Of a DNA stretch of 64,000 nucleotides, positions 20,759 through 54,848 are shown one piece after another (within the stretch, counting starts at the first letter, position 1; every line of letters begins with the position of its first letter). The notes under the pieces were generated by a model, which searched no databases, was not told the DNA's origin, and worked only from the letters and a program-made list of their open reading frames with translations. Location of the stretch: contig NW_003314327.1 of NCBI RefSeq assembly GCF_000143415.4, positions 25,116 to 89,115 on the forward strand, given 5' to 3'. The stretch is from Selaginella moellendorffii. Its lineage: Eukaryota > Plantae > Lycopodiophyta. A program made the position numbers and the translations under genes.

Positions 20759-22832
20759 ATGGAAAGCAGCAGGCTGTGGTGGGGAAGAAGCGCCGGAGTG
20801 CTCATCGGCTTCTTGTTCTTGGCACATTTGGCAAGCGGGCTGAGACCACTGCTACCCTATGGCACCGAGTTCGTGAAGAATCCCACCGGCTTGTTACGGA
20901 GGTCTCTCGAGGATGGGGCGTTTTCACCAGATTTCTCTCCAGCCTCTGGACCTTCTCCGCTGCCACAAGAAGCCTCGGCAATTAGTCCATCTGGGGGTAC
21001 TTTGCAAGGTTTGTGATTCTATTTTTTTTTCTTTTGCGAAGGTCGATGTATCCTTATCCAAAATTTCTTTTCTTTTCTTTTCTTCCAGCTCCGATCGGTG
21101 CTAGTGATAGCGGACACAGTGATGGTGGTGGCCATCACATGAGAAAGGGTGTCCTTGCCGCAATCATCCTCGTGCCCACGCTGGTTTGTGCCTCTATACT
21201 TTTGTCTTCGTACATTTCGCTGGATTCTCTCCGACCCCGGCTAGCGAAAGTTTTTGGGAAAGATGAAGGCTATTCCGACCCTCCAACGCCTCTGCCCCCT
21301 TATCGTAAGCTTTTCCTGATTGTGAAGGTAGAGCTGACTGGATTCTGGCAAATGTAGATGGCGGTGGGGGTCCAGTTCAAATCAAAACGAAGCGTTCCGA
21401 TGAACCGGCAAAGCCAGCTCAAGTTATGGATTACAAAATGCTGGAAAGTGCCACTGACAGATTCAGCGAGGAGAATCTCATCGGGGAGGGTGGATTTGCT
21501 CGAGTGTACAAGGCCCAGCTGGATGATGATCATGCCATCGCAGTGAAGAAACTATCCACCGAAAATGATCAGGCTGACGAAGAGTTCCGGGTTGGTATCG
21601 TGCATTATTTGTCCGAACGACTCTGATGGTTGCTGTGGCTCTTTCTGCTTTCTTTCAGGCCGAGATTGATCTCATGGGGCGAATTCATCATCACAACTTA
21701 ATAGCTCTTCTTGGTTTCAGCTCGCAAGGAGAAGACCGACTTCTCATTTATGAGTTGATGACAAATGGTTCACTGCAGGACCAGCTTCAAGGTGAGAGGA
21801 CTGAGCTCCTCGTACCATTTCCTTTAACTTCGTGGCTTTCTCCAGGGCCTGCCCAAGGAGCTGCTCTCACCTGGCATTTACGCCTCAAAATTGCCCTTGA
21901 CGCAGCCAGGTTGGTTTCCAATTTGAACTTCGCTTTCCGGCATGACTTTGTTTATTCGTAAAGTGCAGAGGACTTGAATACCTTCACGATCACTGCGATC
22001 CACCAGTCATCCACAGGGACTTCAAATCTTCTAATATACTCCTAGACGAAGACTTCAATGCAAAGGTTCGTCGCCATGTCAATTCGAAGCTATATGTTTA
22101 CATTTTCTTGCCTTGTTTGTTTACTTGCAGCTATCCGACTTTGGTCTTGCTCTGATGGTACAAGAAGGCGCCGGCAGCCTTCAACTGCAAGGCACATTTG
22201 GCTACGTTGCTCCAGAATACATCCTCACTGGTCAAGCCTTGTGAATTTTTTTATCTTTCTTTCGCTGTCACCTCACCTTCCTTTGAAAACGCAGGAATTC
22301 TCACGGAGAAGAGTGACGTCTATGCATTTGGCGTTGTGCTTCTGGAGCTCATCACCGGGAGAAAACCCATTGACGTCTCAATGCCAACAGGGTGCCAGTC
22401 GCTTGTGACATGGGTATGACGTCTCGAGATTTTCCTCTTGCGGAGACTTTCTGTGCATCAACCTACTGCCACTTACTTGCAGGCCACGCCGCAACTGACC
22501 GACCGCACCAGGCTTCCCCTCATTGTGGATGCTGCGATCAAGGATACTGTCAACTTGAAGCAACTCTTCCAAGTAAGTGCGCTTCCTCTTTTCGGTTTTG
22601 GTTTGTTTGTTGCCAGTGCTGGCTGACTTGATGATTCTAACGCAAGATTTGTGTGTAGGTCGCTGCTGTTGCTGTTCTATGCGTCCAGTCGGAGCCAAGC
22701 TACAGGCCTTTGATTGGAGACGTGGTGAACTCTCTGATCCCGCTGGTCCCTTGCGAGCTGGGTGGTGCTTTGAGGGCGATTGATCCGGCAGGAGCCACTG
22801 CGGCAAACTCCCACTCCCAACACGGCGTGTAA
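20759..22832 (+). CDS. Receptor-like protein kinase with short ectodomain (At1g80640-like), multi-exon
   Basis: Signal peptide, TM ([13 protein letters not shown]), [63 protein letters not shown] at 22830-22832. Confidence 0.9.
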
Positions 22833-23028
22833 AACAAAGGATGTGAGTAACCATGCGTAGAATGCAACAATTTTGTAGAGAAGCATGGCTATATGAAATA
22901 TTCCACATTTAAATAAAAACTCTTCTTCCTCTAATGCGTGTTACAACTTCGTCACCGTCGATCAAACGCGATCCCAACCGTCTATGTTTACCCGTTAGGG
23001 AGAAGCTAGGTCAAAAAATTGGCGAGCG

Positions 23029-23964
23029 ATGGTGGCGTGCGAGTTTGGGGACGACGATTGTCGTGAGCTCCTCAAGCTGTACAGGCGGGGTGAGAAGCTG
23101 GGATCTGGCGGCCAAGGGCAGGTCTACTTGTTAAGTGCTCGTCACAAGGCTGGCAAGAAGTATGCGGGGAAATTGGTTGAATCGATGTGGAATGCCGAGA
23201 ACGAAGCTCGGCTCATGTCCAAGCTTTGCGTCTGCCCTGGAGTCGTCGCCTTTGAGGATTTCGTGAGGGAGAGAGAGGCCGGGAGGTGCTATGGGACCAT
23301 TGTTATGGAGCTTTGCGGCCCTAGCTTGGCAGAGCGATTGATCCAAGGCAGGGCAGTGACTGAGGAGGAAGCAGCCAAAACTATTAAAACGCTAGCAGAA
23401 ACGCTCAAGTGGATGCACTCGAGAGGGGTTGTCCACCGAGATCTCAAGCCTCATAACATCTTTGAGAGGCTCAATGCCACTGCAGTGGACGAAGTGGTGA
23501 TTGGAGATTTTGGCATGGCCACAGACAAGCAGTGGGATATGTGGCAGTACTGTGGAACAGCAAAGTACATGGCACCCGAGATGGTAGCAGTGAAGAGTGA
23601 TGGGGCTCGAGGACCACGAGCAAGCTACACGGAGGCCGTGGACGTGTGGGGGTTGGGAGTCATTGCGTACGAGCTGCTGAGAGGGTATCGAGCGGGAGTC
23701 GAATTTGATTTTTTGAGAGCCGGAGCATTCCCGAGTGGTTTTGCATCGTGTGAAGCAGAGGATCTCATCCAGGGAATGCTAGCTGTGGAGCAGAGGAAGA
23801 GGGTGACTCTGGATGCTGTGCTTGCGCATCCCTGGATCGTCAAGCATTGTGGTAGTGGGGAGGTCTTGGCGAGAAGGGCAAATAGAAGGCATTGTGGAGT
23901 GAAAAGAAGATCTTCTGGCATCGGCGGCGATTTAATCGGGAAAAAATTTTTAGTGGGATATTAA
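23029..23964 (+). CDS. Intronless CAMK-group Ser/Thr kinase, intact copy 1
   Basis: GSGGQGQV, YAGK, HRDLKPHN, DFG, YMAPE and DVWGLG are all present in a 311-aa ORF. Confidence 0.88.
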   Translation: MVACEFGDDDCRELLKLYRRGEKLGSGGQGQVYLLSARHKAGKKYAGKLVESMWNAENEARLMSKLCVCPGVVAFEDFVREREAGRCYGTIVMELCGPSLAERLIQGRAVTEEEAAKTIKTLAETLKWMHSRGVVHRDLKPHNIFERLNATAVDEVVIGDFGMATDKQWDMWQYCGTAKYMAPEMVAVKSDGARGPRASYTEAVDVWGLGVIAYELLRGYRAGVEFDFLRAGAFPSGFASCEAEDLIQGMLAVEQRKRVTLDAVLAHPWIVKHCGSGEVLARRANRRHCGVKRRSSGIGGDLIGKKFLVGY

Positions 23965-24289
23965 AACCAGCAGTATGGATATCGTTTTCCAAGTTTTCAA
24001 GAACAGTTAAAGTTAATTTTTATTTTTTTGCTTTTCCAGAAATCGGTATTGAGAACAATGATACTGGATGAACAGCATATGAAGAATAGAAAAATGAATA
24101 GAACGAGAGCACTGATAAAGTTGATGAAGGGGCTTTTCTCTTCCAGAAAACTTCATTCAGGTGGAAGACATTTTCGAAAAAACATCCTTCCACCACAAAA
24201 TTCAATATATAGAAAGAAAAATTCAAAACCAAAGACGACATCGTTACGTACCGCGACATGAACTCTCGCCCACACAAGGCCACGATCAT

Positions 24290-24825
24290 GAGCGCGCTCG
24301 CGGCACCGTCGGCTCTCGCGGATTTTGGCAATCCACACCCGAGCTTTCGAGCCACTCCAGCGGTGGAGTCCGCACTCGCGAGCTTGCACGCCATGGGATG
24401 CTGTTCGAGAAGAACCGCGAGAAGGATCTAGTCTCTAGGATGGTGGCAGCGTGCGCGCAGCACGGAGATGGGTCCGAGGCCCTCACGCTGATCCACCAGA
24501 TGGAGCTGGAGGGGATCTCCCCGAATGGAGTGACGCTGTCGGGGTGCTCGCATCATGCTCCCACGCCGGGCTGCTCGAGCTGGGGATGTTCTATGCCCTC
24601 CACACCGCCGGAGCAGCTTCACCACAAACCCGTAGTGCTCGCTCTCCACCGCCACCCCGTGCTCGCGTCTCAGCCACCCCCGCTGCTCCACAGTATGCCG
24701 CTGGAGCCGTGACGCACACGAGGAGGTGAGCCCCGCGGACCATGTCGCATGGGAGTTGGATCCCGGCGACGCTGCGTCTTACGTGCTCCTCGCCATGCAT
24801 ACTCAGCGCGGGAATTTTTGTGGTC
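24290..24825 (+). pseudogene. PLS-class PPR gene remnant (block copy A)
   Basis: KDLVSRMVAACAQHGDGSEALTLIHQMELEGISPNGVT, VLASCSHAGLL and LLHSMPLEP, with frameshifts. Homologous to 41130-41420 and 47700-48115. Confidence 0.75.
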
Positions 24826-25039
24826 GGGGTAAAGTATTCTTCCTTGCCAACTTATGGTGATCTCATTTTCCCAGCGGAGCCTTCTGCTTGAAAGAAGAAG
24901 ATGCGCAGAAGCAAAACAATGGTGGATGACTCTCTCACTCTGCTTTATCATATATACATGATCAACAGTTGTGGCTATCCTACAGTGATGTGGCAACTCA
25001 TGCCACGTAGACTCTCATAGAGCGTATATCTCCAACACT

Positions 25040-26775
25040 ACTGACGAAAAGTTCCAGGATGGACATGTCAAGTCACTTGATGCAGCGTGCATGACAGACA
25101 GTTGAATATGGAACACTTCGGCTGAACAAGCTCCCAACAATGCTTTATACCCGAAGTCAATACCTTTCACAGGCGCTGGTTCCAACGATGTCATCGCGAA
25201 CAAGCTGACTAGCTCCAATAAGCTTGAACAAGTCACAGTGCCAGCCAGCTCTTGGTAAAGCAACTTGAGACTGCCGAAAGAATTCGACGATCACCACAGG
25301 CGATGCTTTGGATGATCATTCAACATCTTGTCATGATTTGGACAGCAATGGTTCGGATACACTTGAAAGGCTACCACCGGAGCCTTCAGCTGAAGACTTG
25401 ATCTAGACAATCCCGCATACGTGGCGGAAAACACTTTGACAGAATAAGTAAAGCATGCTTCCAACAATGCTTCAGGTTACAAGTCTGGTTCCATCAGCAA
25501 AAATAATGTAAGTCAAATGTACCAAGAAGAAAGAAACACAGAACAAACCTGCAGATAGTCTGCTCCAAAATTTTCGTAAGAATCCAGTGAAAAGGACTGT
25601 AGCAACGTTCCCTCCGATAGCAAGTTGTTGTCAAGGGAAACACGGTATACATATAGGTGTACACCGTGCTTCCCCAGAGGACCATAAGAGATGCAGATAT
25701 CCACCTCCTGACTCCTTGCGTTAAGTGCCCTGCAAAGAAATGAAAGTTCGTGCTCAAAAGCAGCGACGGGTTTTAGCATATCCAAGCTAGTAAGCCGCTT
25801 GCTGATGGAACTAAAGCCAGTAGTTACTCTCGACTGCTTCTCCAAATCGTTCGCTACGGGATCATTTTGATCAGCTTCCGGCAATTTGGTCCACGTATTC
25901 GTAGTAGATACTTCTTGTAGCTGCAAGCGGAGTTTGGAATTCAACTCACTCCAGACGGCGACAGCCTTCAACTTTTGCTGTTCATAGCCCCGAGCTTCCC
26001 AGTCAGTTGAACATAGTGCGGGTGGTTTCTCTTGCTGAACGTGATCTGAAGGCTGAACTTTTTGCGACTGCCTCAATGAGATGCCGTCGGTCGCTGCTGG
26101 AGATGAAGGTAGATCTCCCTCCTGCAAGATATAACCGCAAGACTTTCTGGAGCATTTTAAAGCTAGCCATCGTTCCTCAAGGACCTCACCTTGTTCTTGG
26201 ATGTGACACGGATGGCTACTTTGCAATCTGGTATTCTATCTTCGGTTTGCAGTCGTCCAAGAAACCCACTCTCTTTTTACATCTTACTGGAATATCTCCA
26301 AAACAGCTACTTTCTTCATGCCACATTTCAAGATATACCTTTTCAAACATTCACATCGTAGACCTTTCTTTGGTGGATGATTTCAGAGATCGAGACTGCT
26401 GTGTCTGTCTTCTGACCAATGTCAAAGGATGCGAAACATCAGAACCACTGGAGAATGGCCCTGCTAGAGAATAATGCCTCGTAACATGTATGAAAATCTA
26501 CTGAACGTTTTTTGTTCATAACATTCGATTGCAGAACATCCTCAGCAGCCGTCATGGGACGTTATGGGGTTGCTGGCACTGACGAGAGGCAAGTTTTTCT
26601 TTGGGAATTTCCACCGGAAAAAGAGTGGTTGAAATGTTTGAACAAGGTATGAGATTCTTGTTTTCCGAATATGCAAGTGCAATATAGAATCGAAAATTGT
26701 ACAAGTAAAAACTACAATGTTTTCGCGTTTGCTGGCAACTGTTGGAGAGGATGGGCGTGTTGTTCTGTATGTGTA
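25040..26775 (+). pseudogene. Deleted and internally inverted copy of the FYR/WD40 gene (copy A)
   Basis: Direct nucleotide match to parts of 37464-39410, introns included, with frameshifts, deletions and an inversion at 25497-25918. Confidence 0.88.
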
Positions 26776-26809
26776 GGAGGTATGGCAATAAAAGTTTGTA
26801 ACTCGAGCT

Positions 26810-27215
26810 TCACTTTCCCTTAACATTCAGTTCTGAATCTGAAAGGGGCGCTTCAGCAGCTCCAGACTCGATGATCTCCGCACAGGTACAAACCTGCATC
26901 AACTTTTGGTGCTTTCGAGAGGTTGGTCGGTGGAGTCTGATCTGGTTGAGCAAACAAGATCCTGTATATCTTCAAGTGCTGCCACTTCACTACTGTTTCC
27001 CGCCCAAACCATTCCTCAAGCTCGGACCTCCATTCTCAGTTTTGGTCGACCGTCTGGACTGCTCGCAAGGAACTCGAGGATGGCTTAAGACGAGAGTCAA
27101 CTGCTACTTGGTTGTGGTGGTGTTGTTGCTTTACCTGGACGCGGCAATTCGGATACAGTGGGGATTCCCATCGACTAGGTGGCAAGGCTACCATGGCCAC
27201 AGGGAATGTGGTCGC
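26810..27215 (-). pseudogene. Collapsed copy of the FAD amine-oxidase gene (5' and 3' ends joined, about 1 kb deleted)
   Basis: Matches 49406-49660 joined to 50735-50932. Confidence 0.88.
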
Positions 27216-27294
27216 CATACTCTCTATAGCCACTTCGTTTTGTTTTAAGAGGTTCCTTGGATTGCAGGACGAGATCCAACGGGGGTGTTTTGAG

Positions 27295-28115
27295 TAGTGA
27301 GCAGCACGCGTGCAGGAGCAAGGTGAGTGGAATTTTTAGTGCCATCCGCACATTATTTTGGTTTTCCTGGCAGTTCAAGCTCGCCGTTTGCCAGCTCTCG
27401 ATTTGCGCAGACAAGGAACAGAACATCAGGCATGCTCGTGAAGCTATCCAGACGGCTGCTGATGGCGGCAGTAAACTGGTCCTTCTTCCAGTTAAGTTTT
27501 GTAGTTGTCTGTTCAGTTATAAGGAGAATGTGTTGCAGGAAATGTGGAATTGTCCATACTCAAACACGAGCTTTCCAATCTACGCGGAGGATATTGACGC
27601 AGGTGATTCTCCCTCTTCCAATATGCTTTCGGATATGGCAGGTTACCATCATCGGTGGCTCCTACTGGAACGAAATGGCGATCATCTCTACAATACTTGC
27701 TGCATCTACGGAAAAGATGGCTCTCTAAAAGGAAAACATCGGAAGGTTTGCTTTTATGACGCGTCGTCTACGGTTTTTTCTCAGCCCTCTTTCACACCAG
27801 GTTCAATTTTTTAACATTGATATACCAGGAAAGATACAGAAGTATACTGTTGTTGATATGGGTAAGGTCCTGCAGGCATTACGACAAGCAAAATAACTCA
27901 CATTGCTCACTGATGCAGATGTTGGACAAATCGGTGTTGGTATTTGCTAGATGGCAATGACTTACGCAGCACGAGGTACGGAGAAGGCTAGCCGTACATA
28001 TTATCTGCTATCCAGGAGCTTTCAACATATCTACGGGACCAGTGCATTGGGAATTCCTCCAGAAAGCCAGGTAACTCTTTGTTTCTTTCTTGTTGGCCGC
28101 AGCATTTACTGGCAA
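27295..28115 (+). pseudogene. Deleted copy of the omega-amidase gene (copy A)
   Basis: [31 protein letters not shown] and KHRK, with introns. Matches 51240-52092. The GICYD region is deleted. Confidence 0.88.
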
Positions 28116-28134
28116 GGGGTTTTTTGTGTTTTTG

Positions 28135-29065
28135 AAGGCAAGAGCTCAGGGTGAGGAGCCACTGCCAGGCGCTCCAAGCTCTTGACTCCGGACAGCACGA
28201 AACAAATGAAGCACGGAGACAGGAAAGCTAGGTAGAAAACGGGAAAGATGGCGGAGTAGACACCAGGCACACGACAAACAAGGAACAAAACGCCAAGAAT
28301 CACGGCAAAACCAGCACCAGAAGGCCGCCCTGGTGCCTGCACAGTGTGAAGAGGAACCTCCACCACCAGCATGGAACGCTGTTGGACGACGAAGTGACAT
28401 CGGCAGGATCCACAACCAACGAAGAGGAGACCAGAGGAGCGGCGATGCTGGAGGATACCAGAGATGAGAACACCGAATTGATGTCGACTTTGGTGGAGAT
28501 GAGCAACCGGGAACTCAGGGTGCTGCAGTGCTCGGCTATCAGTGTTCTTCATGATGACGTCAAGGTTTGCTCTCGCAAGAAGCCTAGATTTGTTTGACCT
28601 GTTAAGAAAATGTGTGTGCTCCAGGGATTGCAAGGCTGCTTGGAAGGCAGAAAAGCGGGCTATTCTCTTCAAATATTTTGTCGTTGCTGGTTGGCTCGTA
28701 TCCGGGGCATTTGGTTTGCGTACTGTTGTCGACATGCTCAAGAGGACGCCACAACTGACCACATTGTGGATGCTGCGATCAAGGATACTGTCAACTTGAA
28801 GCAACTCTTCCAAGTAAGTGCGCTTCATCTTTCGGTTTTGGTTTGTTTGTTGCCAGTGCTGGCTGACTTGATGATTGTAATGCAAGATCCGTGTGTAGGT
28901 CGCGCTGTTCTAGGCGTCCAGTCGGAGCCAAGCTACAGGCCTTTGATTGGAGACGTGGTGAACTCTCTGATCCCGCTGGTCCCTTGTGAACGCTCTGATC
29001 GCGCTGGTGGTGCTTTGAGGGCAATTGATCCGGCAGGAACCACTGCAGCACAACAGAGCGTGTAA
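28135..29065 (+). pseudogene. Chimeric gene-X / RLK-3' fragment (junction about 28747)
   Basis: Matches 53680-54443, then switches to RLK sequence 22486-22832. Confidence 0.85.
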
Positions 29066-29912: not shown

Positions 29913-30085
29913 TGTAACGCATGTGATTATGGGATGAGATTTGGATATACTGCCATTGTGAATCTTTGGAACTTTGGGGGATAAATGGGGATAAAATAAT
30001 TACTAAGAGCTCTTTCATCAAGCAATTACCCCTTTTCCAGTTGGTTTAAGGTGAGAGATAGAGTGCATTACATGTGGTATCAGAG
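29913..30085 (+). mobile_element. Short 160-bp LTR followed by tRNA-iMet PBS (truncated TRIM/LTR element)
   Basis: TGTAACGCA...TGCATTACA inverted termini (29913-30072), then TGGTATCAGAG at 30075-30085. Starts exactly where kinase homology stops. Confidence 0.75.
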
Positions 30086-32239
30086 AAAATGGCATGGGTT
30101 CAATTTCCATTGATTAGTGGCTACTTAAAAATATAATATACCCTTGAGCAAGGTATATTCCTACCCCTAAATTTGAACGTATATGTGATGAAAGTATCCA
30201 CTGTAGTTGCCTCACATGGAATAATTAATCTACACAATAGAAGTCCTCCAAGCAACTTCATAAACACATTGCTCACTATCACATGGATATGATATATATT
30301 CATAATGACTTGATCATCAATCAAGCAACATCATGAGCAACACCCATGTCATTACTTCAAAGAATTGAGCATTGCAACCCAAGTCCTCCAATAACAAACT
30401 TAGACAAAATGAAAGATCATCATCTCCAAAATGCATCAAGGTAGGGACTCTTGATTGTATAATGTGAACACGAGCAATGAGTTACACCTTGTTGCAAATC
30501 ATCTCTCCAAGAAGAGAAAATGATTTATGTGTTTGATCCTTCGTCCTCGACAACTCTCTTTTCGGTCTCATCTTTTGACCAAACCTCAATCTTGCTTTCG
30601 CACTATCTTTAGTCCAATCTAAGAAAAGTTTATGAGAAAGCATGGCAATGACTACTTGAACTAATAGACTAATCGCTACAATCTTGATTGATCCACTTAT
30701 AATCATGCCTAGGAAGGATCCACTACTATAGTGCTAAATAGCGACGGACCAGTCTATTTGCCACTCATAGCAAACCCAGGGAAGGTTTGCTTTAACTTAT
30801 GGTACATGGAACAACTCATGGAACCACTAGAACAACACCGATAAGCTAACATTAATCCTGCCAACTCAAAGTGTAACTTTGAGTTGCTAATGTGCTTCAC
30901 TCACAAGCCCAAGCTCAAACTCGTGCAACTGGAATATCTCAAATCCATCTTATGAGCCCAAAAGCAAGCTCAGATAATAAGGTACAACAAGGTAACCAAA
31001 TCCCTACCCAAGGAACGATTGTGAAGCCTTTGCACCCAACATGTACCCACTCGGATCATTGTTTTCATCTTTGCATATACAATGAGACTAGTTGCTTAAT
31101 CTCATTGTATAGTTCTCTTTATCCTATGGTGATTTACCATAGGATAACACCACGAAGTGGAACTTAAACCCTTTTTATGCCATGTGACACATGCCACATG
31201 TCATATGTCACGTGTCCAAAGGACAGTGGTGCGGAACCCAAGGTTTAGGGCCTTGGGCCACTGAACGAAGGAACAATGCCAAACTCCCAAGCATGGAGCC
31301 AAAGAGTGACGGAACTGGACCACGGAGCAACTCCCGAGCATATAGCCCAAAGAGTGAAGGGACAGGAGCCTGGAGCAAGTTGGAACAGTCCTAGAGTAAC
31401 CAGCTTCCCAATGCCAAGACCAGCATGCAAAACGGAGCCAAACGGAGTTTGGCGTTATTTCGGCATACCAATAGTCTAACACAAGGATATGGGTACTCCA
31501 CCAGCTAGCATGGAATGAAACTTAGGCTTAGACCTAAGCTAGATGTAGAACAAGGATAGACATGCAAGTGGGAGTTAGACTATGCCTCAAGTTGGTCGGC
31601 TATGCCCGACCTACCCACTATCCCTCCACCCCCCTTAAGGAACACATGCTTTGGGCTTTCACCCCAAGCCTCCCTTAGTATCAGGAGTTAGTCTCTGGGA
31701 CAAGCTCAAAACTTACTATGGAATGGCGCCAGATTGCAAATTTGGACACGGGATGAATACTATTGTGTTCAAGAAAATCTTTACATTCCATAGATATGCC
31801 AAATAAGCAAATCTGGATGCTTTCCATAAATAGCATTTAGGACCGGAATAAGACTAACACAAAGGGCATGATAGCGAGGGTGTTTGGCAGACACGGTAAG
31901 CTATCATCCAATGTTATTGAGGGACTAGTCTCAATATGCAAAGGTTTTTGTCAAGCTAGTGCAAGACAGAGCAAAAAAGAACTAACAAGCCGGGCCGAGT
32001 ATGCTCAGCTAAATAGACATTTAGGAATTCCTTCCTTATGCTTATCCGGCCAAGTACAGATGCTAAGTCCAATTTACTAACACTTGAACAAGAGGGGCCA
32101 ATAAAAGGAACCAGCAATACCGACCTCCTGCCATCGTGGCAGTAAGGAAAGAGTGTCCGTAAAGACTAGCCGACAGGTAACTTTCGATACCCAAAGTCAC
32201 ATTCGCGACACTTTGTGACATAGATATTCATGAAAGTGT

Positions 32240-36275: not shown

Positions 36276-36289
36276 AAAAACACATGCCA

Positions 36290-41103: not shown

Positions 41104-41129
41104 CCTCGCCTCAGCCTAGAACCCTAACC

Positions 41130-42816: not shown

Positions 42817-42910
42817 AAAGATAACTATGGCCCAAGATAAATTTAATCCTAATAGTACAAAAGTGGCCTAATTATTTTAAATAAATCTATATTCACGATT
42901 TCATAAACTT

Positions 42911-44055: not shown

Positions 44056-44127
44056 GGGCAAGTAGCTTAGTGGTAGAGCACCTGGCACCAGTATAGGAGG
44101 TCTTGGGTTCAATCCCCGGCCTGTCCA
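44056..44127 (+). ncRNA. tRNA-like (Ala-type acceptor) Pol III unit in the 5' LTR
   Basis: 72-nt cloverleaf with A box TAGCTTAGTGG, B box GGTTCAATCC, non-canonical anticodon loop CACCAGT and TTTT downstream. Confidence 0.8.
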
Positions 44128-44309
44128 AATCCATTTTCCAACATGGTATCGGAGCTATGGTTGGATGGCCTGACTGGCAGGTAGGGATGTGTGGCGTGTT
44201 CAGCTTAGGGGGGAGTGGCCTGTGGTAGACATGGACTGGCAGGTAGGGATGTGTGGCGTGTTCAGCTTAGGGGGGAGTGTTGGAACTAAGCTGAACATGC
44301 ACACAACCA

Positions 44310-44381
44310 GGGTAGGCAGCTCAGTGGTAGAGCACCTGGCACCGGTGTAGGAGGTCCTGGGTTCAATCCCCGGCCTGTCCA
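44310..44381 (+). ncRNA. tRNA-like (Ala-type acceptor) Pol III unit in the 3' LTR
   Basis: GGGTAGG-CA-GCTC AGTGGTA GAGC-A-CCTGG CACCGGT GTAGG-AGGTC-CTGGG TTCAATC CCCGG-CCTGTCC-A, with TTTT downstream. Confidence 0.8.
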
Positions 44382-44402
44382 GATCCATTTTCCAACATGG
44401 AC

Positions 44403-44561
44403 TACTCGCAAGGAACTCGGGGATGGCTTAAGACGAGAGCAAAGTGCTACTTGGTTGTGGTGGTGCGCTTGCTGTACGTGGAAGCGGCAATTCGGATAGA
44501 ATGGGGATTCCCATTGACAAGGTGGCAAGGCTACCATGGCCACAGGTAATGTGGTCGCCAT
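44403..44561 (-). pseudogene. 5' fragment of the amine-oxidase gene (copy D), the TRIM target
   Basis: Matches 50774-50932. The empty-site sequence CCGTCTGGACTGCTCGCAAGG is present in the intact gene. Confidence 0.85.
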
Positions 44562-44639
44562 ACTCTCTATGGCCACTTCGTTTTGTTTTAAGAGGTTCCT
44601 TGGATTGCAGGACGAGATCCAACGGGGGTGTTTTGAGTA

Positions 44640-45465
44640 GTGACCAGCGCAAGGTGAGTGGAAGTTTTAGTGTCATCCGCACATTATTTTTGTTTTTGTG
44701 GCAGTTGAAGCTCGCCGTTTGCCAGCTCTCGACTTGCGTAGACAAGGGACAGAGCTATCCTTGAACAGGACGGCTTAAAAGGACGGCTGCTGGTGGCGGC
44801 AGCAAGCTGATCCTTCTTCCAGTTAATTTTTGTAGTTGTCTGTTCAGTCATAAGGAGAATGTGTTACAGGAAATGTGGAATTGTGCATACTCAAACGCGA
44901 GCTTTCCAATCTACGCAGGCGATTCTCCCTCTTCCAAAATGCTTTCGGACATGGCAAAGAGTAAGGAGGTTACCATCATCAGAACGACGTGCGATCATCT
45001 CTACAATACTTGCTGCATCTACGGAAAAGATGGCTCTCTAAAAGGTAAACATCGGAAGGTTTGCTTTTCTGACGCGTCGTCTACGGTTTTTTCTCAGACC
45101 TCTTTCACACCAGGTTCACTTTTTTGACATCGATATACCAGGAAAGATACAGAAGTATACTGTTGATTCGGGTAAGGTCCTGCAGGCATTGCGACAAGCA
45201 AAATAACTCACATTGCTCACTGACTCAGATGTTGGACGAATCGGTGTTGGTATTTGCTAGATGGCAATGACTTACGCAGCACGAGGTAGGAAGAAGACTA
45301 ACCATGTAGCTGCTGAGGATTAAAATCTATGTTGGTGCCAGGCGTACATATAATCTGCTATCCAGGAGCTTTCAACATGACTACGGGACCAGTGCATTGG
45401 GAACTCCTCCAGAAAGCTAGGTAACTCTTTGTTTCTTTCTTGTTGGGCGCGGAATTTACTGGCAT
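44640..45465 (+). pseudogene. Deleted omega-amidase copy (copy D)
   Basis: [26 protein letters not shown]. Shares deletions with the other decayed copies. Confidence 0.88.
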
Positions 45466-45477
45466 GTGTTTTTCATG

Positions 45478-46011
45478 ACGAAGGCAAGAGCTAAGGAGCC
45501 ACTGCCGGGCGCTCCAAGCTCTTGACTCCAGATGGCACGAAACAAGTGAAGCACGGAGACAGGAAAGCTAGGTGGGGATTTCTTTCCGTTAGTTTGAAGG
45601 AAGAGGTGGCCAAGGACTCGTATTTGGGCTCGTATTTTGTTTGCGTATCGTCATCTACATGCTGAAGAGGACGCCGGAGCTGAGTGATCGCACGAGTTTT
45701 ACCCTCGTTGTGGATGCTGCGTTCAAGGATACTGTCAACTTGAAGCAACTCTTCCAAGTAAGTGCCCTTCCTCTTCCTCTTCTTCTTCTTTCGGTTTTGG
45801 TTTGTTTGTTGCCAGTGCTGGCTGACTTGATGATTCTAATGCAAGATCCGTGTGTAGGTCGCTGCTGCTGCTGTTCTATGGAGCCAAGCTACAGGCTTTC
45901 GATTGGAGACGTGGTGAACTCTCTGATCCCGCTGGTCCCTTGTGACGCTCTGATCGCTCTGGTGGTGCTTTGAGGGCGATTGATCCGGCAGGAGCCACTC
46001 CGAGCGTGTAA
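45478..46011 (+). pseudogene. Chimeric gene-X / RLK-3' fragment, junction about 45672
   Basis: [39 protein letters not shown], nearly identical to the inverted copy at 35200-35590. Confidence 0.85.
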
Positions 46012-46173
46012 AACACAGGATGCATGCGTACAATTTTGTAGAGAAGCATGGCTATCCAGATTCAAATAAACGACTATCCTGAAATCACAAGATCGTCACC
46101 GTTGATCAAACGCGATTCCAGCCGTTGATTTGTACCCGTTAGCGAGAAGCTAGGTCAAAAAATTGGCGAGCGA

Positions 46174-47098
46174 GCGAGTTTGGGGAGGACGACTGTGGTG
46201 AGCTCCTCAAGTTGTACAGGCAGGGTGAGAAGCTGGGATCTGGCGGCGAAGGGCAGGTCTATTTGTTGAGTGCTCGTCGCAGGGCTGGCAAGAAGTATGC
46301 GGGGAAATGAGTTAAATTGATGAGGAATGCCGAGAACGAAGCTCGGCTCATGTCCAAGCTTTGCGTCTGCCCTGGAGTCGTGGCCTTTGAGGATTTCGTG
46401 AGGGAGAGAGAAGCTGGGAGGTGCTATGGGACTATCGTTATGGAACTTTGCGGCCCTAGCTTGGCAAAGCGATTGATCCAGGGCGGGGCAATGACTGAGG
46501 AAGAAGTAGCCAAGACTATTAAAACGCTAGCAGAAACATTCAAGTGGATGCATTTGAGAGGGGTCGTCCACTGCGATCTCAAGCATCACAACATCTTTCA
46601 GAGGCTCAACACCACTGCAGTAGATGAACTGGTGATTGGAGATTTTGGCACGGCCTCGGACAAGCAGTGGGATATGCAGCAATATTGTGGAACAGCAAAG
46701 TACATGGCACCCGAGGTGGTAGCTGTGAAGAATGATGGAGCCCGAGGACGACGAGCGAGTTACACAGCGGCCGTGGACATGTGGGGGCTGGGAGTCATTG
46801 TGTACAAGCTGCTGAGTGGGTATCGATCGAGAGTCGAATTTGATTTTCTGAGAGCTGGAGCATTCCCAAGTGATTTGGTGTCGTGTGAAGCAGAGGATCT
46901 CATCCAGGGAATGTTAGCTGTGGAGCAGAGCAAGAGGGTGACTCTAGATGCCGTGCTTGCACATCCCTAGATCGTCAAGCATTGTGGTAGTGGGGAGATC
47001 TTAACAGCGATGCCACATAGGAGGAGGCATTGTGGAGTAAAGAGAAAGTTTTCTGGCACGGATGCGGATTTAATTGTGAAAAAGATTCTAATGGGATA
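46174..47098 (+). pseudogene. Ser/Thr kinase pseudogene (copy D)
   Basis: Start codon deleted, TGA near 46308, HRD changed to HCD, premature TAG at 46968-46970. Confidence 0.9.
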
Positions 47099-47354
47099 AC
47101 TGTGAAAGCGAGCAATCCAGTATGTTTATATATATCCATCAACTCGCTGAGAAAATGTACACTTACTTCAAAAGTGATGCGTGGCAATATGATAAAAGGC
47201 TCATTGATGACCCATTCCTACTAGCAGGTAGAACGTTAACAACAAGAGACTTCAACTTCTAGACATACTTACTTCAAACATAAGACTATACTTTCTGCAT
47301 ATCATTTATATATATTGTTTTCTTTGAAGTTTTCTAAAACACATAAACATTAAC

Positions 47355-47550
47355 TTATAATTTTATTCTGATTTGTCCGGAAATCAGTATTGCTAATAGG
47401 GCTGAGAATAACAATTTTGGAGACATATGTGAACAACATACAAAGAATAGAATTATAATTTTATTCTGATTTGTCCGGAAATCAGTATTGCTGATAGGGC
47501 TGAGAATAACAATTCTGGAGACATATGTGAACAACATACAAAGAATAGAA
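47355..47550. repeat. 98-bp near-perfect tandem duplication in an AT-rich spacer shared by block copies
   Basis: 47355-47452 versus 47453-47550. Related single copies lie near 24015-24100 and 33985-34080 (inverted). Confidence 0.88.
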
Positions 47551-47699
47551 AGAATAGAAGAGAAAAAGAAGCAAGAGCATTAGTAAAGTTTTGGCATTGA
47601 ACTTCTAGAAAAATGTTTATTGTGGTGGAAGGCATTTTGAGAGACAGCCTTCCACCATAAAATTCAGTATATAAAGAAAGAAAAATTCAAAACCAAAGA

Positions 47700-48115
47700 T
47701 GAACTCTCGCGGCGGATTTTGACGAAGGCACTGCAATCCACACCCGAGCTTTCGAGCTAGGAATCGCCACTCCAGCAGTCGCGAGCTTGCACGCCAAGTG
47801 TGGGAGCCTGGATGCTGTTCGAGAAGAACCGTGAGAGGGATCTGGAACGCGATGGTTGGAGGGAGGGATGGAGTGGTGCTCGCGTCGTGCTCCTGTCGAG
47901 CGGGATGTTCTACGCGGGCTGGCGGAAGCGCGAGCACGGGGAGGCGGTGGAGAGCGAGCTGCTCGGGCGGTGTGGGAGGCTGGGCGAGGCCGAGGCGCTG
48001 CTCCGCAGTATGCCGCTGGAGCCCGATGGGTGACGCACAAGAGGAGGTGATCCGCGCGGACCGGGTTGGATCCCAGCGACGCTGCGACTTACGTGCTCAT
48101 CGAGCGCGGGAATTT
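47700..48115 (+). pseudogene. PPR remnant (copy D)
   Basis: LLGRCGRLGEAEALLRSMPLEPD. Homologous to 24290-24825. Confidence 0.72.
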
Positions 48116-48139
48116 TTGTGGTTCTAGGCTGGGTCGAGG

Positions 48140-49372
48140 ATGGGGAGAGCGGCGCCAATGCGGCAGCAATCGGTGGAGATCGAGGCCCTTGGATCGCTTT
48201 TCCAGGGCCCGTGGGAGAAGAGGTACTGGAGCAGCTCTCGGGTGAGGGATTTCTCTGGAGTCTAAGATTGTGCCCGATACTCCGGAGGTACTTCACGTGA
48301 GAGAAGAAGAACATAATTCACCAAATCTAGGCTAGAGCGTAAGTACAAATAGCTTCCTCATGAAATGCAGTGAGAATCTCATTTTTTTCTTTTGACGCAG
48401 TCAGCAGTCATTGTTGGGATCCAACTCAGAAGAAAATCAAAACAACTCGGACTTGTTTGCCAGCATGATATCTCTGCTACTTCCAAATGCCGAACGTGAT
48501 CCGAAGGCTGAACAATTTGCGACTGCCGCAATGAGATGCCTTTTGATAACAGGAGCTCTTTCTTTAGTCGCTGCTGGAGATGAAGGTTGTATCAAAGAAT
48601 GGCGCATGGATCCGTCTTGGAGGTAGTCGTTTTTCACGTTTGTATTTCCTTGCATTAATCACGTCCTATTCAGGCATTCTTTGTATGAAACAGATCTCCC
48701 TCCTGCAAGATATAACCCCAAGACTTTCCGGAGCATTTTAAAGCTATAAATCGTTCCTCAAGCACCTCACCTTGTTCTTGGATGTGACATGGATGGCTAC
48801 GTTGCAATCTGGTATTTCTAACTTTGGTTTGCATTTGTCCAAGAAACTCACTCTCTTTTTTATTACATCTTACAGGAATATCTCCAAAAAGCAGCTGCTT
48901 TCTTCATGCCACAACTTTTCCAGACATTCACGTCGTCGATCGTTCTTTGGTGGATGGTTTCATAGATCGAGACTACGATTGTTGTGTCTGGCTTCTGAAA
49001 AATGTTAAAGACGATGCGAAACGTCAGAACCTCTGGAGAATGGCCCTGCTAGAGAATAATGCCTTGTTTGTTGGCAGTGATCTTGCTAACAGGTATGAAA
49101 ATCTACTGGAACTTTTTGTTCATAACATTCGATTGCAGAATATGCTCAGCAGCCGTTGCTGGCACTGACGAGGGGCGAGTTTTTCTTTGGGAATTTTCCA
49201 CTGGAAAAAGGTGGTTGAAATGTTTGACCAAGGTATGAGATTCTTGTTTTTCAAGTCGTCTCTTATGCAAGCGTGCAATGTAGAATCGAAAATCGTACAA
49301 GTGAAAACTACAACGTCGTCGCGTTTGCTGGCAACTGTTGGAGAGGATGGGCGTGTTGTTCTGTATGTGTAG
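48140..49372 (+). pseudogene. Collapsed copy of the FYR/WD40 gene (copy D)
   Basis: Exon 1 (EIEALGSLFQGPWEKRYWSSSR) and the 3' exons are retained, with multi-hundred-bp deletions and frameshifts. Confidence 0.88.
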
Positions 49373-49405
49373 GAGGTATGGCAATGCAAGTTTGTAACTC
49401 GAGCT

Positions 49406-50932
49406 TCACTTTCCCTGAACTTTCAGTTCGGAATCTGAAAGGAGCGCTTCAGCAGCTCGTCTCCCTGACAGAAGTGCTCCGTCGAAAGTTGCTGAGACTC
49501 GGTGATCTCCGCACAGGTACAAACCTGCATCAACTTTTGGTTCTTTCGAGAGGTTGGTCGGTGGAGTCTGATCGGGTTGAGCAAACAAGATCCTGTATGT
49601 CTTCAAGTGCTGCCACTTCGCTACTGTTTCCCGCCCAAACCATTCCTCGAGCTCGGACCTCACTATTTTCTCAAGCTCGGCATCGGAACTGGTGGAATAT
49701 CTTCCGATCAATGTTACCGAGACGAGAGCTTTTCCAACAGGGGCGTACGAAGAGCAGACGCTGCTGGGAAAGCACATATTGTTGATGACGCCTTTGTCAG
49801 TGCCGTTCAAGAGCAGGACAGCTTCCTTGATTGGGGCTCTATCGGCAGAAAAGTAGAGGCAGACAGTGCTGCGAGCTGGCTTATCGGTGCTTTCGCAAGC
49901 TGTTTTGCTGCTCAGCAAACGAGCTGCTTCCGGACCTTCGACTGCCACTATTATCCCGTACTTGGACTTGACAACCTTTCCAGTATCAAGTCTCACCTTT
50001 GAAACTTTACCGTCTTCTCCGACAAGCAGCTCTTGTACTCGGGAGTTCAACTTGATTGATTCTTCTGGAAGGCTTCGAGCAAGCTGCTGTGATATTTCGC
50101 CGATGCCTTTAGCGGGAAGGCAGTTCTGTCCCAGAGCCAGGCACTTGAAGACGAAGTTAAAAAGCCGGGACGTGGTTTTCAGCTCTCTGTCGAAGAAGAT
50201 GCCACCGAAGAACGGTCGGAAGAATCGATCTATCATCTGCGAGGAAAAGCCGTCGGTCTTCAACTTTTCTCCGATCTCTACTTCAGGTGCCGAGACAAGT
50301 TTCTCAAATGGTTGTGATGCTGCTTGAAGCCTGACAATGCCGACGAGGATTTTGTCCTGAATAGTACCAATCGGATTACCAAGCGACAGTATGCCGTCGA
50401 CCAGGTGACGGAACGGGTCTGCCACTTTGTGAAAGCGTCCGTCAAACCAGACAAAGGCTCCGGCATAAAAGTTCTTGAGCTCCAGCGCTTGGTAGTCGAG
50501 AACTTCTGCAGCCTCCGGATATGCGGATATGAAGATCTGGAAGCCCCTGTCCAGGACGTAGCCTTGGACGGTGTCACTTCTCACTCGACCTCCAACTCCA
50601 TCCGACGCTTCAAGCAGCTGGAATGTGATGCCTTCTTTGTGCAAGCGTCGTGCTGCCGCGAGACCAGCAAGGCCTGCTCCAACTATTACAACGTCAACCT
50701 CTGGAGGAGAAACGTTATCAGCAGATTCAGATGCTCCATTCTCAGTTTTCCAAGGCTGGTCGACCGTCTGGACTGCTCGCAAGGAACTCGGGGATGGCTT
50801 AAGACGAGAGCAAAGTGCTACTTGGTTGTGGTGGTGCTGTTGCTGTACCTGGAAGCGGCAATTCGGATAGAGTGGGGATTCCCATCGACTAGGTGCCAAG
50901 GCTGCCAGGGCCACAGGTAATGTGATCGCCAT
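49406..50932 (-). CDS. Plastid-targeted FAD-dependent amine oxidase / phytoene-dehydrogenase-like oxidoreductase (At3g09580-like), intronless, intact
   Basis: 508 aa with a transit-peptide-like N-terminus, VIVGAGLAGLAAA, EASDGVGGRVRSD, LDRGFQIF and GDHRVSATFDGALLSG. Confidence 0.92.
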   Translation of the reverse strand: MAITLPVALAALAPSRWESPLYPNCRFQVQQQHHHNQVALCSRLKPSPSSLRAVQTVDQPWKTENGASESADNVSPPEVDVVIVGAGLAGLAAARRLHKEGITFQLLEASDGVGGRVRSDTVQGYVLDRGFQIFISAYPEAAEVLDYQALELKNFYAGAFVWFDGRFHKVADPFRHLVDGILSLGNPIGTIQDKILVGIVRLQAASQPFEKLVSAPEVEIGEKLKTDGFSSQMIDRFFRPFFGGIFFDRELKTTSRLFNFVFKCLALGQNCLPAKGIGEISQQLARSLPEESIKLNSRVQELLVGEDGKVSKVRLDTGKVVKSKYGIIVAVEGPEAARLLSSKTACESTDKPARSTVCLYFSADRAPIKEAVLLLNGTDKGVINNMCFPSSVCSSYAPVGKALVSVTLIGRYSTSSDAELEKIVRSELEEWFGRETVAKWQHLKTYRILFAQPDQTPPTNLSKEPKVDAGLYLCGDHRVSATFDGALLSGRRAAEALLSDSELKVQGK

Positions 50933-51026
50933 ACTCTCCAGTCACTTCGAAAGTTTTTTTTTAAGAGGTTCATATTGACGGCTTGGATTGCAGGACGAGA
51001 TCCAACGGGGGTGTTTTGGGAGTAGA

Positions 51027-52543
51027 ATGAGCAGCGCCCTTTTCCTGCGACTTCCCATTCTAGCGCGTGCAGGTGAAAGTTTGAGGCGCTGTGCTGCTCG
51101 CTCCGGAGTTCGAGATTTTGCAAGCATGCAGTCAGATGCAAGGAAACCGCCTTCGCAGGCTCCACCGGAGCCTCCGACTAGCAAGGTCAGTGGAAGTTTT
51201 ATTGTATCGGGATGCCCTCGTCACGTTACTTTTGGTTTTTGTGGCAGTTCAAGCTCGCCGTTTGCCAGCTCTCGATCTGTGCAGACAAGGAACAGAACAT
51301 CAGGCATGCTCGTGAAGCTATCCAGACGGCTGCTGATGGCGGCAGTAAACTGGTCCTTCTTCCAGTTAAGTTTTGTAGTTGTGTGTTCAGTCATAAGGAG
51401 AATGTGTTACAGGAAATGTGGAATTGCCCATACTCAAACGCGAGCTTTCCAATCTACGCGGAGGATATTGACGCAGGTGATTCTCCCTCTTCCAAAATGC
51501 TTTCGGATATGGCAAAGAGTAAGGAGGTTACCATCATCGGTGGCTCCATACCGGAACGAAGTGGCAATCATCTCTACAATACTTGCTGCATCTACGGAAA
51601 AGATGGCTCTCTAAAAGGAAAACATCGGAAGGTTTGCTTTTCTGAGGCGTCGTCTACGGTTTTTCTCAGCCCTCTTTCACACCAGGTTCACCTTTTTGAC
51701 ATCGATATACCAGGAAAGATACAGTTCAAAGAATCGGACACACTGAAGCCTGGAGATAAGTATACTGTTGTTGATACGGGTAAGGTCTTTCAGGCATTAC
51801 GACAAGAAAAAAAAACTCACATTGCTCATTGACGTAGATGTTGGACGAATCGGTGTTGGTATTTGCTATGACATTCGCTTTCCGGAGATGGCAATGACTT
51901 ACGCAGCACGAGGTACGAAGAAGGCTAGCCAGGTAGCTGCAGTGTATTAAAATTTATGTTGGTGCCAGGCGTACATATGATCTGCTATCCGGGAGCTTTC
52001 AACATGACTACGGGACCAGCGCATTGGGAACTCCTCCAGAAAGCCAGGTAACTCATTGTTTCTTTCTTGTTGGCTGCGGAATTTACTGGCAACGTTTTTT
52101 TTTTTTTGTTTTTTCAATTTCCAGAGCCGTAGACAATCAGGTAAGTATTTTTGATGTTTTGTCTTTCTTACTCTTTTTTTTTTTCTAGCTGTTTGTGGCC
52201 ACTTGCTCACCAGCCAGAAATCCAAGCGCGGGATATGTTGCTTGGGGACACTCCAGTGTCATTGGACCGGTAACATCATGCTGTTTTATCAATGCTTTTC
52301 TCAATCTGTCTGAATTTTTTAGTTCGGAGAAATACTGGCGTCAACAGGACGTGAAGAGGCGATTTTCTATGCAGACATCGACTATGCTCAGATCAAGGAA
52401 CGCAGGTGCTGTTCTTGTTTCTGGCATAACGGAGGTTTCTCAACCATTTTCTCTTTTCCTTTCCCGTTAGGATGAACATGCCTCTGGACCATCAGCGAAG
52501 AGGTGACTTGTATCAGCTCGTCGACTTGACCTTGGCAACATGA
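51027..52543 (+). CDS. NLP3: Omega-amidase (nitrilase-like NLP3/NIT2 type), multi-exon, intact
   Basis: FKLAVCQL, catalytic E (LP|EMWN), K (KHRK) and C ([10 protein letters not shown]), [31 protein letters not shown] at 52541-52543. Confidence 0.9.
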
Positions 52544-52791
52544 GCAGTTCCAGCAGTAGGAACAAGGAAAGTGTTCTGGGAAATAGATCGAGTAGTTGTT
52601 CTGAGAATATCCTCCCCTTGTCCGGGTGACGTGGGGTTAGTTTAACTGTCGGAAGTGTTCTTACCGCCGCAGCATGAGAGGAGAGCATCAGTGTCCGAGC
52701 GGCAGCAGGGTAACAGGTTATCCAGCAACAGGAGTGAGCACGTCCTAGACTCGTGGAGCTTTGCTTGAGGTGGTGGGATGAAGTGAGACGG

Positions 52792-54848
52792 ATGTGGAAG
52801 GACTATTGCTCGCGTTTGAAGGAAAGAAGCAGCGGTATGGGGGCGCTCAAGAACGACGACGTTCTCTACGACTACATTGCCAGAGCGGTACGTTTCTTAT
52901 TTAACAAGCTTTCTTATGTTTTCACTCTCTTATGTTTCAGAATCCCAACATTTACTTTCAGCCTCGAGCAGCGAAGCAGATGAAAGTGCCGCAGCCAGTT
53001 TTGTTCCCCGGATATCTCTGCCCGCTTGCCACTGAAGAGTTTGAGGAGGAAGAACCCACGCCTTCGCAAACTCAAGTAATTTGGAGTCCTTTGTTCGATG
53101 GCACTGAGCTCAAGCGCTTGGGTGGTGGGCTCAAAAGTGAGACGGCTATTGTACCTGAGCTTCCAGCTGGTTGGAGAACGGCCGAACAAAAATTGCTGGA
53201 AATGGGAGCTAGAAATGGGGATTATCTGGGACACACCGTTAGCAGTTGTTCTAGTAACTCGGAAGAGGAGCCGCCAACGGTTTGGACAAGCGCTCAGTGC
53301 TTGCTTCACATGAAGGATTTGACTGATCCACAAAGTGGGATAGAACAGGAGCAGGCGCCTGGAATCGCTGAGAGCTTTTTAGAGTATAACAGCTGCGAAC
53401 TAGGTGGGACAGACAAGCTTGACCACGTACCGGAGAACCTTCTCCTGGTTGACGATTACGAAGAGAAGCTCAAAAGCTATCACTCCGAAGTGAGTGTGGA
53501 AGAGAGCAGATATCAGACATGTAGTGGCGGGGATGGAAGCGTTTGCAGCGTTCTGAGTGCGGGTATCGGCCGTGGGAAGCTGAACAGCAGGGAGTCATTC
53601 AGGGAGGACGTTCTTTTGAGCGAGATCAGTGGAGGGGAGTCGTCCGAGACGAGGTCGTGCTCCACCGCCAACGACGACGGCAAGAGCTCAGTTCGAGGAG
53701 CCACTACCGGGCGCTCCAAGCTCTTGACTCCGGACGGCACGAAACAGGTGAAGCACGGAGACAGGAAAGCTAGGCGGGGATATCCTTACATTAGTTTGAA
53801 GGAAGAGGAGGTGGCAAAGGAATTTTCAAGGCCTCGAATTTGGAACAGCGGGGTTAACAGAGGACCGCTGCAGCAGAAAACGAGAAAGATGGTGGCGCAG
53901 ACACCTGGCAGAGGCGCAGAGACGACAAACAAGGAACAGAACGCCAAGAATCACAGCAAAACCAGCACCACTAGCAGCACCAGAAGGCCGCCCTGGTGCC
54001 TGCACAGCGTGAAGAGGAACCTCCACCACCACCATGGAACGCTGTCGGACCACGAAGTGACGTCGGCAGGATCCACAACCAACGAAGAGGAGACCAGAGG
54101 AGCGGCGATGCTGGCGGATACCAGAGATCAGAACACCGAATTGATATCGACTTTGGCGGAGATGAACAACCGGGAACTCAGGGTGCTGCAGTGCTCGGCT
54201 GCGATTATGCGTCACAACATCGGTGTTCTTCGTGACGACGTCAAGGTTTGCTCTTCCAAGAAGCTTTGATTTCTTTGACATGTTAAACATGCGAATGTGT
54301 GTGCTCCAGGGATTGCAAGGCTGCTTGGAAGGCAGAAAAGCCCGCTATTCGTGGTGGACGCTCTTCAAAGATTTTGTTGTTGCTGCTGGGCTCGTATCCG
54401 GGGCATTTGGTTTACGTACCGTCATCGACATGCTCAAGAGGACAGTTCGATATGGTGAGATTTTGTTTTGGATATATAGTCGGTAGAGCGTAACATCTAC
54501 CGTATTTTTTTCTTCCTTGAAGTCCCTCTCACACTCTTTTCTTCCAGGTGCATTGAACAAGCTAACAAACAAGCAAGAGAAGATGGCCTTGGCAGCCTTT
54601 GTTCTCACGGTTGGAGCACGCTTCGGCAAGCAGATATGGCGAGAACAGGTACACATACTGTTTGGATCTCGCAGGATAGATCGTGTAACTTATGGCTGGA
54701 TCTTTTCCAGGGAAATGCCAGCTCCCGGCGCGAGATAAAGCTACGGGAGCAACTGTCCAGGATTAACGAGAGGGTGTCTCTCATGTCGGACCTGGCTACC
54801 AGCGATCGCCAGCAAACAGTCGCCGCCGCCGCAGCAGAATCCGAGTGA
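52792..54848 (+). CDS. Uncharacterised protein 'gene X' (long acidic/disordered exon, C-terminal hydrophobic segments and coiled coil), multi-exon
   Basis: A 445-codon open exon flanked by consensus splice sites, followed by three small downstream exons that join in frame. The start codon is uncertain. Confidence 0.65.

Follow-up and report, generated by a model that had tools for sequence, protein, structure and literature searches.

Tandem segmental duplication arrays, plant kinase and resistance-gene clusters among them, expand by unequal crossing-over and erode by birth-and-death decay, while after whole-genome duplication (WGD) redundant copies are removed mainly by short deletions in the process termed fractionation. 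Inverted duplications from staggered breaks and replication-based rearrangements of the duplication-triplication/inverted-duplication (DUP-TRP/INV-DUP) type are likewise known classes. Tandem-duplication-random-loss (TDRL) is a model of mitochondrial gene-order change (PMC5569537, PMC7936035), and fractionation, or reciprocal gene loss, after WGD is mentioned in PMC3334584 and PMC4117954. Here we analyze a 64,000-nt stretch (the window) of a Selaginella moellendorffii scaffold of 1,098,469 nt, in which a block of seven unrelated genes recurs in several collinear copies, one of them inverted. We propose that the locus very probably arose when a segment was amplified locally, fairly long ago, and that its copies then underwent ordinary birth-and-death decay.

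The copies were located by self-BLAST of the window (E-values 0 to 1e-20), which is without any N, so that the layout sits in contiguous sequence. To identify the genes, exon open reading frames (ORFs) were searched singly against Pfam and protein databases, and database proteins were mapped back onto the window; the protein kinase, PPR, flavin amine oxidase and CN-hydrolase assignments were confirmed. Collinear copies of the gene block span 22.5-54.4 kb at identities of 83-96%, and the self-comparison recovers every copy of the recurrent gene order, about four in number with one inverted, that a previous sequence-only reading of this DNA had picked out. The alignments between copies continue across introns and intergenic DNA, including parts of the amidase, WD40 and X genes (27340-27839 vs. 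51213-51724 is an intron-spanning example from the amidase), which places the copying at the DNA level, as that reading had also held. Ordered along copy C2, the unit opens with the last two exons of an RLK gene, followed by a CAMK-like kinase encoded in a single exon, a post-kinase stretch and a PPR gene represented by its 3' part; then come a FYR/WD40-like gene of 1036 aa, a minus-strand flavin amine oxidase, an omega-amidase, and exons 1-3 of a gene here called X. The RLK-3'/kinase and the amidase/X parts are each present four times and the PPR-3'/FYR-WD40 part three times, in an overall direct-inverted-direct arrangement (A, B and C):

22486-28747, plus strand: unit copy A1, with RLK 3' part, intact kinase, PPR 3' fragment, broken FYR/WD40, oxidase remnant, and amidase and X fragments (self-BLAST)
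28759 to ~29978, plus strand: unit copy A2, with RLK 3' part and a kinase truncated at ~aa 209
29979-33864, no strand: AT-rich spacer of 3.9 kb and 39% GC, between A2 and B
41461-33865, minus strand (inverted): unit copy B, one full unit period; the PPR 5' part continues to ~43.5 kb
~44010-45616, plus strand: partial unit C1, with only the oxidase start, an amidase fragment and an X fragment
45625-54443, plus strand: unit copy C2, with RLK 3' part, dead kinase, PPR 3' part, FYR/WD40 remnant, and intact oxidase, amidase and X

The gene run of B is PPR, intact FYR/WD40, oxidase remnant, amidase fragment, X fragment, the unit junction J1 described below, RLK 3' part, intact kinase and post-kinase sequence. 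Across the block the intact genes are, in order, RLK, kinase, the second kinase, FYR/WD40, oxidase, amidase and X; together with the broken kinase and PPR copies they are laid out as follows:

21139-22832, plus strand: RLK/RLCK-type kinase gene, intact, from a three-frame reading with exon peptide positions and Pfam matches on two exons
23029-23964, plus strand: kinase A1, intact, 311 aa, single-exon, CAMK-like (SELMODRAFT_424198)
within 28759 to ~29978, plus strand: kinase A2, truncated at ~aa 209, with a 177-bp insertion and one stop codon
34096-35028, minus strand: kinase B, intact, 310 aa, strongly constrained
37467-41103, minus strand: FYR/WD40-like gene of the LOC9641062 type, 1036 aa, ~12 exons; the sole intact copy, in B
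41200-43500, minus strand: PPR pseudogene, the only copy with a 5' part, broken across several frames
46167-47102, plus strand: kinase C2, a pseudogene with start codon lost, two in-frame stops, and HRD changed to HCD
49406-50932, minus strand: flavin amine oxidase, intact, 508 aa, single exon, Pfam-confirmed; in C2
51027-52543, plus strand: omega-amidase (CN-hydrolase), intact, 331 aa (XP_002985119.2); in C2
52792-54848, plus strand: orphan gene X, intact, 594 aa (XP_024514810.1); right edge

Exactly one intact copy remains for five of the seven genes, and the survivors are spread over three units, with RLK and one kinase in A1, FYR/WD40 in B, and oxidase, amidase and X in C2. Gene-by-copy coverage thereby bears out the proposal of a local amplification followed by decay that left intact versions in different copies, and the intact and broken states listed previously stand, with two additions: the C2 kinase is a pseudogene, and the PPR gene is broken in every copy of the window, B included, leaving no intact version. 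The accompanying claim that each gene survives once, at unchanged dosage, fails for both kinase and PPR, the former having two intact copies, a recently dead third and a further copy outside the window, the latter none. The picture of a compact genome purging its redundancy is correct insofar as decay occurred, but the purge is incomplete, with about two-thirds of the 32-kb block still consisting of debris or transposon sequence.

The history of the array is recorded at its internal joins. J1 is found at 28.75, 35.55 and 45.62 kb (A, 28740-28765, plus strand; B, 35535-35560, minus strand; C, 45610-45630, plus strand), and its breakpoint does not vary: in each case the penultimate RLK exon continues the reading frame of X exon 3, with ~2 bp of overlap. 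The same breakpoint at all three joins points to a single non-homologous founding duplication that was later re-copied. A second shared character concerns C2 52108-53676, a 1.57-kb segment holding the amidase 3' exons and X exons 1-2, which is absent identically from A1, B and C1; this common deletion argues that amidase and X were killed once, in the first spare copy, before re-copying. At each J1 join an ORF (35202-35756, minus strand; 28610-29065, plus strand; 45593-45970, plus strand) carries a transmembrane-like exon of X in frame with the C-terminal exon of RLK, and such X::RLK fusions could possibly yield chimeric transcripts.

A further junction, J2, joins the post-kinase stretch to the middle of a PPR repeat and is common to A1 and C2, whereas the PPR of B reads continuously across the J2 point. 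The end of B at 33865 falls ≤10 bp from the J2 breakpoint, which indicates that B represents one full unit period. On the simplest reading, the spacer at 29979-33864 would be ancestral post-kinase sequence and J2 would have deleted the spacer plus the PPR 5' part; alternatively, J2 and the B end could reflect a re-used fragile point. The spacer may otherwise be filler at the rearrangement breakpoint. A conserved hairpin with a ~14-bp stem lies ~30 bp from this shared point (47620-47660, 24160-24195 and 33903-33935); its stability is modest (z-scores of -1.7 to -2.8), and we list it as an observation, not as a cause. The spacer also contains the decayed C-terminal remains of a Pif1/Helitron-type helicase (32181-32784, plus strand), with no Helitron termini at the spacer ends. 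The two deletion characters are in conflict: the J2 deletion is present in A1 and C2 but not in B, the 1.57-kb deletion in A1, B and C1 but not in C2. Together they fit no single whole-unit tree, and the units are therefore mosaics, as expected from unequal crossing-over or gene conversion.

At the other end of the inverted segment, a comparison asking whether C1 has the oxidase deletion of A1 shows the two breakpoints to differ by ~20-35 bp, and the sequence left of C1 (43.4-44.0 kb) shows no homology to the oxidase or WD40 parts above shuffled controls. About 12 bp inside the C1 left end lies a miniature long terminal repeat (LTR) element:

44024-44398, no strand: miniature LTR element with TG..CA ends and a 5-bp target duplication, TGGAC

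Its LTRs, ~120 bp each, are tRNA-like in look, and its insertion is later than the copying of the inverted pair. Young local tandem repeats are also found in the decaying copies, one of 98 bp in duplicate at 47355-47550 (97-98% identity) and one of 60 bp in duplicate at 40146-40269 (87%).

Sequence divergence places these events in relation to one another. Kimura two-parameter (K2P) distances between copies range from 0.03 to 0.15. In the amidase part the informative sites split 12:1:0 for (A1,C2 | B,C1), with three shared gaps in addition; RLK-3'/kinase distances are smallest for B-C2, X distances for B-C1. The closeness of the B-C pairs indicates that the youngest copying made the inverted repeat, whose arms (B arm, 33.9-37.0 kb; C arm, 44.4-47.7 kb) are ~3.2 kb long, ~90-92% identical and 7.6 kb apart. 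In the history that emerges, a segment reaching from mid-RLK to mid-X, at least 13 kb in length or ~17.5 kb if the AT-rich spacer is included, was duplicated head-to-tail once, by the non-homologous join J1. The early 1.57-kb deletion crippled one copy, and the crippled, J1-bearing segment was then copied again, probably, in view of the conflicting shared characters, through unequal crossing-over among the units or conversion of one by another. B was probably placed next, by inversion or by inverted duplication, and the redundant copies were later destroyed by private 0.7-1.6-kb deletions, a 391-bp micro-inversion, stops and transposon insertions. The inverted pair itself fits either four tandem units, with parts of A2 and C1 lost in a later inversion, or three units from which an inverted duplication arose.

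A more compact history, which we regard as possible though the less probable course, would derive the arrangement from a two- to three-unit array through a one-step replication-based event of the DUP-TRP/INV-DUP type, or through an inversion whose staggered breaks left ~3.2 kb duplicated at the two ends. Such an event would account not only for the direct-inverted-direct layout and for the greatest similarity falling between the B and C arms in each of the three shared segments, but also for the post-kinase end of B falling ≤10 bp from the J2 breakpoint, beside the conserved hairpin, and for A2 and C1 being cut off exactly where B starts and stops. Simultaneous formation of the A1, B and C1 tails, however, predicts a trichotomy, whereas 12 informative sites unite B and C1 against A1, a grouping that disfavors a one-step origin from two units. 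Furthermore, the outer junctions (~29978 and ~44010) are obscured by the 3.9-kb spacer and offer no readable microhomology, and with B lying between J1 and the spacer, an ancestral spacer would require a long-type unit in a non-first position of the array.

Independent losses are documented for two genes, FYR/WD40 and the oxidase. The label of the former refers to sub-threshold FYRC and WD40-type matches only, its 1036-aa product being otherwise uncharacterised. The B copy covers aa 1-1036 of LOC9641062 at 96% identity, with the apparent stops in the alignment falling in read-through introns and so representing no real breaks, and this working copy is flipped in orientation relative to the direct copies. 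A1 keeps 50% of the gene over several frames and C2 31%, and the gene is absent from A2 and C1. The large exon of A1 carries the 391-bp micro-inversion (25528-25918 vs. B 38521-38911, 93% identical), and two deletions in C2, equivalent to B 40984-40260 and B 39957-38374, are private within the window; the losses in different copies are thus independent deletions. Non-synonymous and synonymous changes in the WD40 exons number 5/6 in B, 12/4 in A1 and 14/5 in C2. We also note that the old gene model SELMODRAFT_424199 was built on the A1 micro-inversion, and that the PPR pseudogene next to the working FYR/WD40 copy has an internal duplication of 176 bp (41643-41818 and 42020-42195, 98.9% identity).

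For the oxidase, the C2 gene is 98.2% identical to the allele XP_002970035.2, while 26% is kept in A1, 29% in B, 11% in C1 and none in A2. The deletions are private and non-identical, A1 being without C2 49661 to ~50738 and B without C2 49888-51278, which argues that these losses, too, were independent. The omega-amidase stands head-to-head with the oxidase, in divergent orientation, with 95 bp separating the start codons; A1 keeps 49% of it, B 47% and C1 50%, next to the intact copy in C2 and none in A2. X, an orphan whose matches among database proteins are in Selaginella only, is kept to 30% in A1, 32% in B and 6% in C1, is intact in C2 and absent from A2, and the repeated unit ends within its exon 3, at 54443. 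At the left edge of the block, the exons of the single intact RLK copy include the Gly-loop, HRD, DFG and APE motifs, and only the last two (from 22483) lie inside the unit. Because the unit ends inside RLK and X, neither gene was ever wholly duplicated, and their survival at the edges is forced and not the result of pruning.

The kinase, absent from C1, follows a different course. It is the only gene of the block retained in more than one working copy and belongs to a CAMK-like family expanded in Selaginella. Pairwise omega values are 0.20-0.27 and, with A1 as outgroup, the B lineage has accumulated 6 non-synonymous and 16 synonymous changes against 23 and 14 in the C2 lineage (Fisher p=0.015). 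The low non-synonymous count in B relative to C2 argues that kinase B is constrained and that constraint also acted on C2 over part of the time, before its recent death; judged by these substitution patterns, A1 and B are two intact copies evidently under purifying selection. The family at the locus exceeds four copies, a further kinase, XP_002985230.2 (SELMODRAFT_121793), 94% identical to B, being located on the same scaffold outside the window. Kinase copy number may be what favored the array, with the other genes as passengers. GenBank numbering suggests that XP_002985230.2 lies on the minus strand, a few genes past the right end of the window, and XP_002970039.2 on the other haplotype is its allele-like partner. 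As a separate observation, synonymous divergence (dS) among the kinases at 23029-23964, 34096-35028 and 46167-47102 is 0.17-0.31, several times the divergence of neighboring non-coding DNA (0.03-0.14); possible causes are a coding sequence rich in CpG or conversion, in patches, by other members of the family.

These patterns bear on the view that the locus underwent pure neutral fractionation, in which about four full copies would have formed first and then lost genes at random and independently until one copy of each was left. The single intact copy of five of the seven genes, with survivors in three units, and the independent deletions in oxidase and FYR/WD40 are what that view predicts. We nonetheless consider it quite unlikely: the kinase is retained twice under constraint and the PPR gene not at all, the loss of amidase and X is one shared deletion older than the re-copying, and RLK and X were never whole within a unit. 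The reciprocal pruning put forward in the sequence-only reading accordingly narrows to one contrast, FYR/WD40 kept in B vs. oxidase and amidase kept in C2, and the analogy that it drew with post-WGD losses extends to the oxidase and FYR/WD40 but not to the single inherited deletion in amidase and X. Its assertion that gene order and orientation were rearranged is similarly reduced, as the working genes retain the order deduced for the ancestor and only FYR/WD40 has been flipped, with an extra inverted kinase added.

Transposon capture and spread of multi-gene fragments, in the manner of Helitrons or Pack-MULEs, is a very unlikely source of the copies. Intron-bearing fragments of several genes do move together, a decayed Helitron-type helicase sits in the spacer next to B, and further unit-derived fragments (~82-88% identity) occur on a 405-kb contig and a 2.45-Mb scaffold. 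The fragments within the window, however, mirror the order and orientation of the intact genes immediately beside them; the unit ends in RLK and X exons that are joined to each other at J1 and not to transposon termini; the unit borders showed neither terminal inverted repeats nor Helitron ends; and the helicase remnant lies outside the unit.

The public S. moellendorffii assembly contains both haplotypes (PMC3680112), and the comparison with the other haplotype was made at the protein level only, from protein clusters and accession order. On the other haplotype, a 2.86-Mb scaffold, that of XP_002970035.2 and XP_002969787.2, encodes allelic versions of the oxidase (98.2%), amidase (98.5%) and X (96.8%), together with two or more kinase genes. 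A kinase and a PPR/FYR fragment, both A1-like, are found on a 13.5-kb contig, as are the FYR/WD40 gene in full (LOC9641062) and a kinase that matches B without difference over 298 aa. The presence of several kinase copies and unit-derived models on that scaffold and the contig argues against a haplotype mix-up. An assembly artefact, with two haplotypes or collapsed and misjoined repeats stitched in series, is thus extremely improbable even for an assembly that includes both haplotypes and a region that the scatter of related gene models over four other scaffolds marks as hard to assemble, since the copies are 6-14% divergent and are set apart by private kilobase deletions and a micro-inversion, while working-gene alleles differ by only 1.5-3% at the protein level, one copy is inverted, the window has no gaps, and the other-haplotype scaffold itself has at least two kinases plus oxidase, amidase and X.

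Local amplification with birth-and-death decay remains our preferred reading, and several points weigh against it. Every history based on unequal crossing-over needs at least one extra conversion or repeated deletion. For the kinase part, informative sites split 9:7:4, close to a star tree, and kinases match between haplotypes at only ~94-95%, so that units of the two haplotypes may not correspond one to one. In addition, we infer the ancestral single-copy order (RLK, kinase, FYR/WD40, oxidase, amidase, X) from the window alone, and selection on kinase dosage is suggested by omega values only.

Outside the block, an older and more diverged duplicate pair (10894-12271 and 13721-14994, 72-76% identity) flanks a GH18 glycosyl-hydrolase ORF on the minus strand (12485-13510). 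The left end of the window contains an 841-aa ORF with a DUF7869 domain and nearby retroelement-like ORFs, and the sequence there (2-2524 and 4054-6200) is probably derived from mobile elements.

Readable base by base, the locus is a well-resolved example of local multigene amplification and its later erosion in a small plant genome free of polyploidy, with one founding junction that was re-copied, one inverted copy, loss mainly by 0.7-1.6-kb deletions, and only the kinase left in additional copies. It could be useful for teaching or for calibrating deletion-driven decay, and it draws attention to a kinase cluster in which the two haplotypes differ.

Set beside the systems described at the outset, the locus resembles TDRL in that a multigene block was duplicated and alternative copies were lost, with pseudogene debris between the survivors. 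It differs in being a nuclear locus with introns, in that its losses are partly inherited from one early deletion, and in an outcome where survivor order is unchanged, one gene is flipped and the return to single copy is not complete. That the locus might be a nuclear counterpart of TDRL caught half-way, in which FYR/WD40 changed strand without a nearby breakpoint and the inverted arms could give hairpin transcripts or small RNAs against the kinase family, is an idea raised by the sequence that we hold to be unlikely. With post-WGD fractionation it shares removal mainly by short deletions and survivors spread over duplicated segments; unlike there, the duplicates are adjacent, not on homoeologous chromosomes, the scale is 32 kb, and there is no sign here of biased or dosage-driven retention except for the kinase. 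The inverted middle copy between direct copies and the ~3.2-kb inverted repeat common to the inverted segment and its neighbor recall DUP-TRP/INV-DUP rearrangements, but the junctions here are unreadable and the sequence relationships oppose a simultaneous origin of all copies. As in birth-and-death tandem arrays, the units stand head-to-tail, one founding junction and mosaic characters run through them, and one family, the kinase, is kept while the rest become pseudogenes; in contrast to such arrays, the unit consists of seven unrelated genes and not of one family, one period is inverted, and both unit ends fall inside genes, giving rise to in-frame X::RLK chimeric exons. The locus is thus a clear new instance of known processes and not of a new mechanism.

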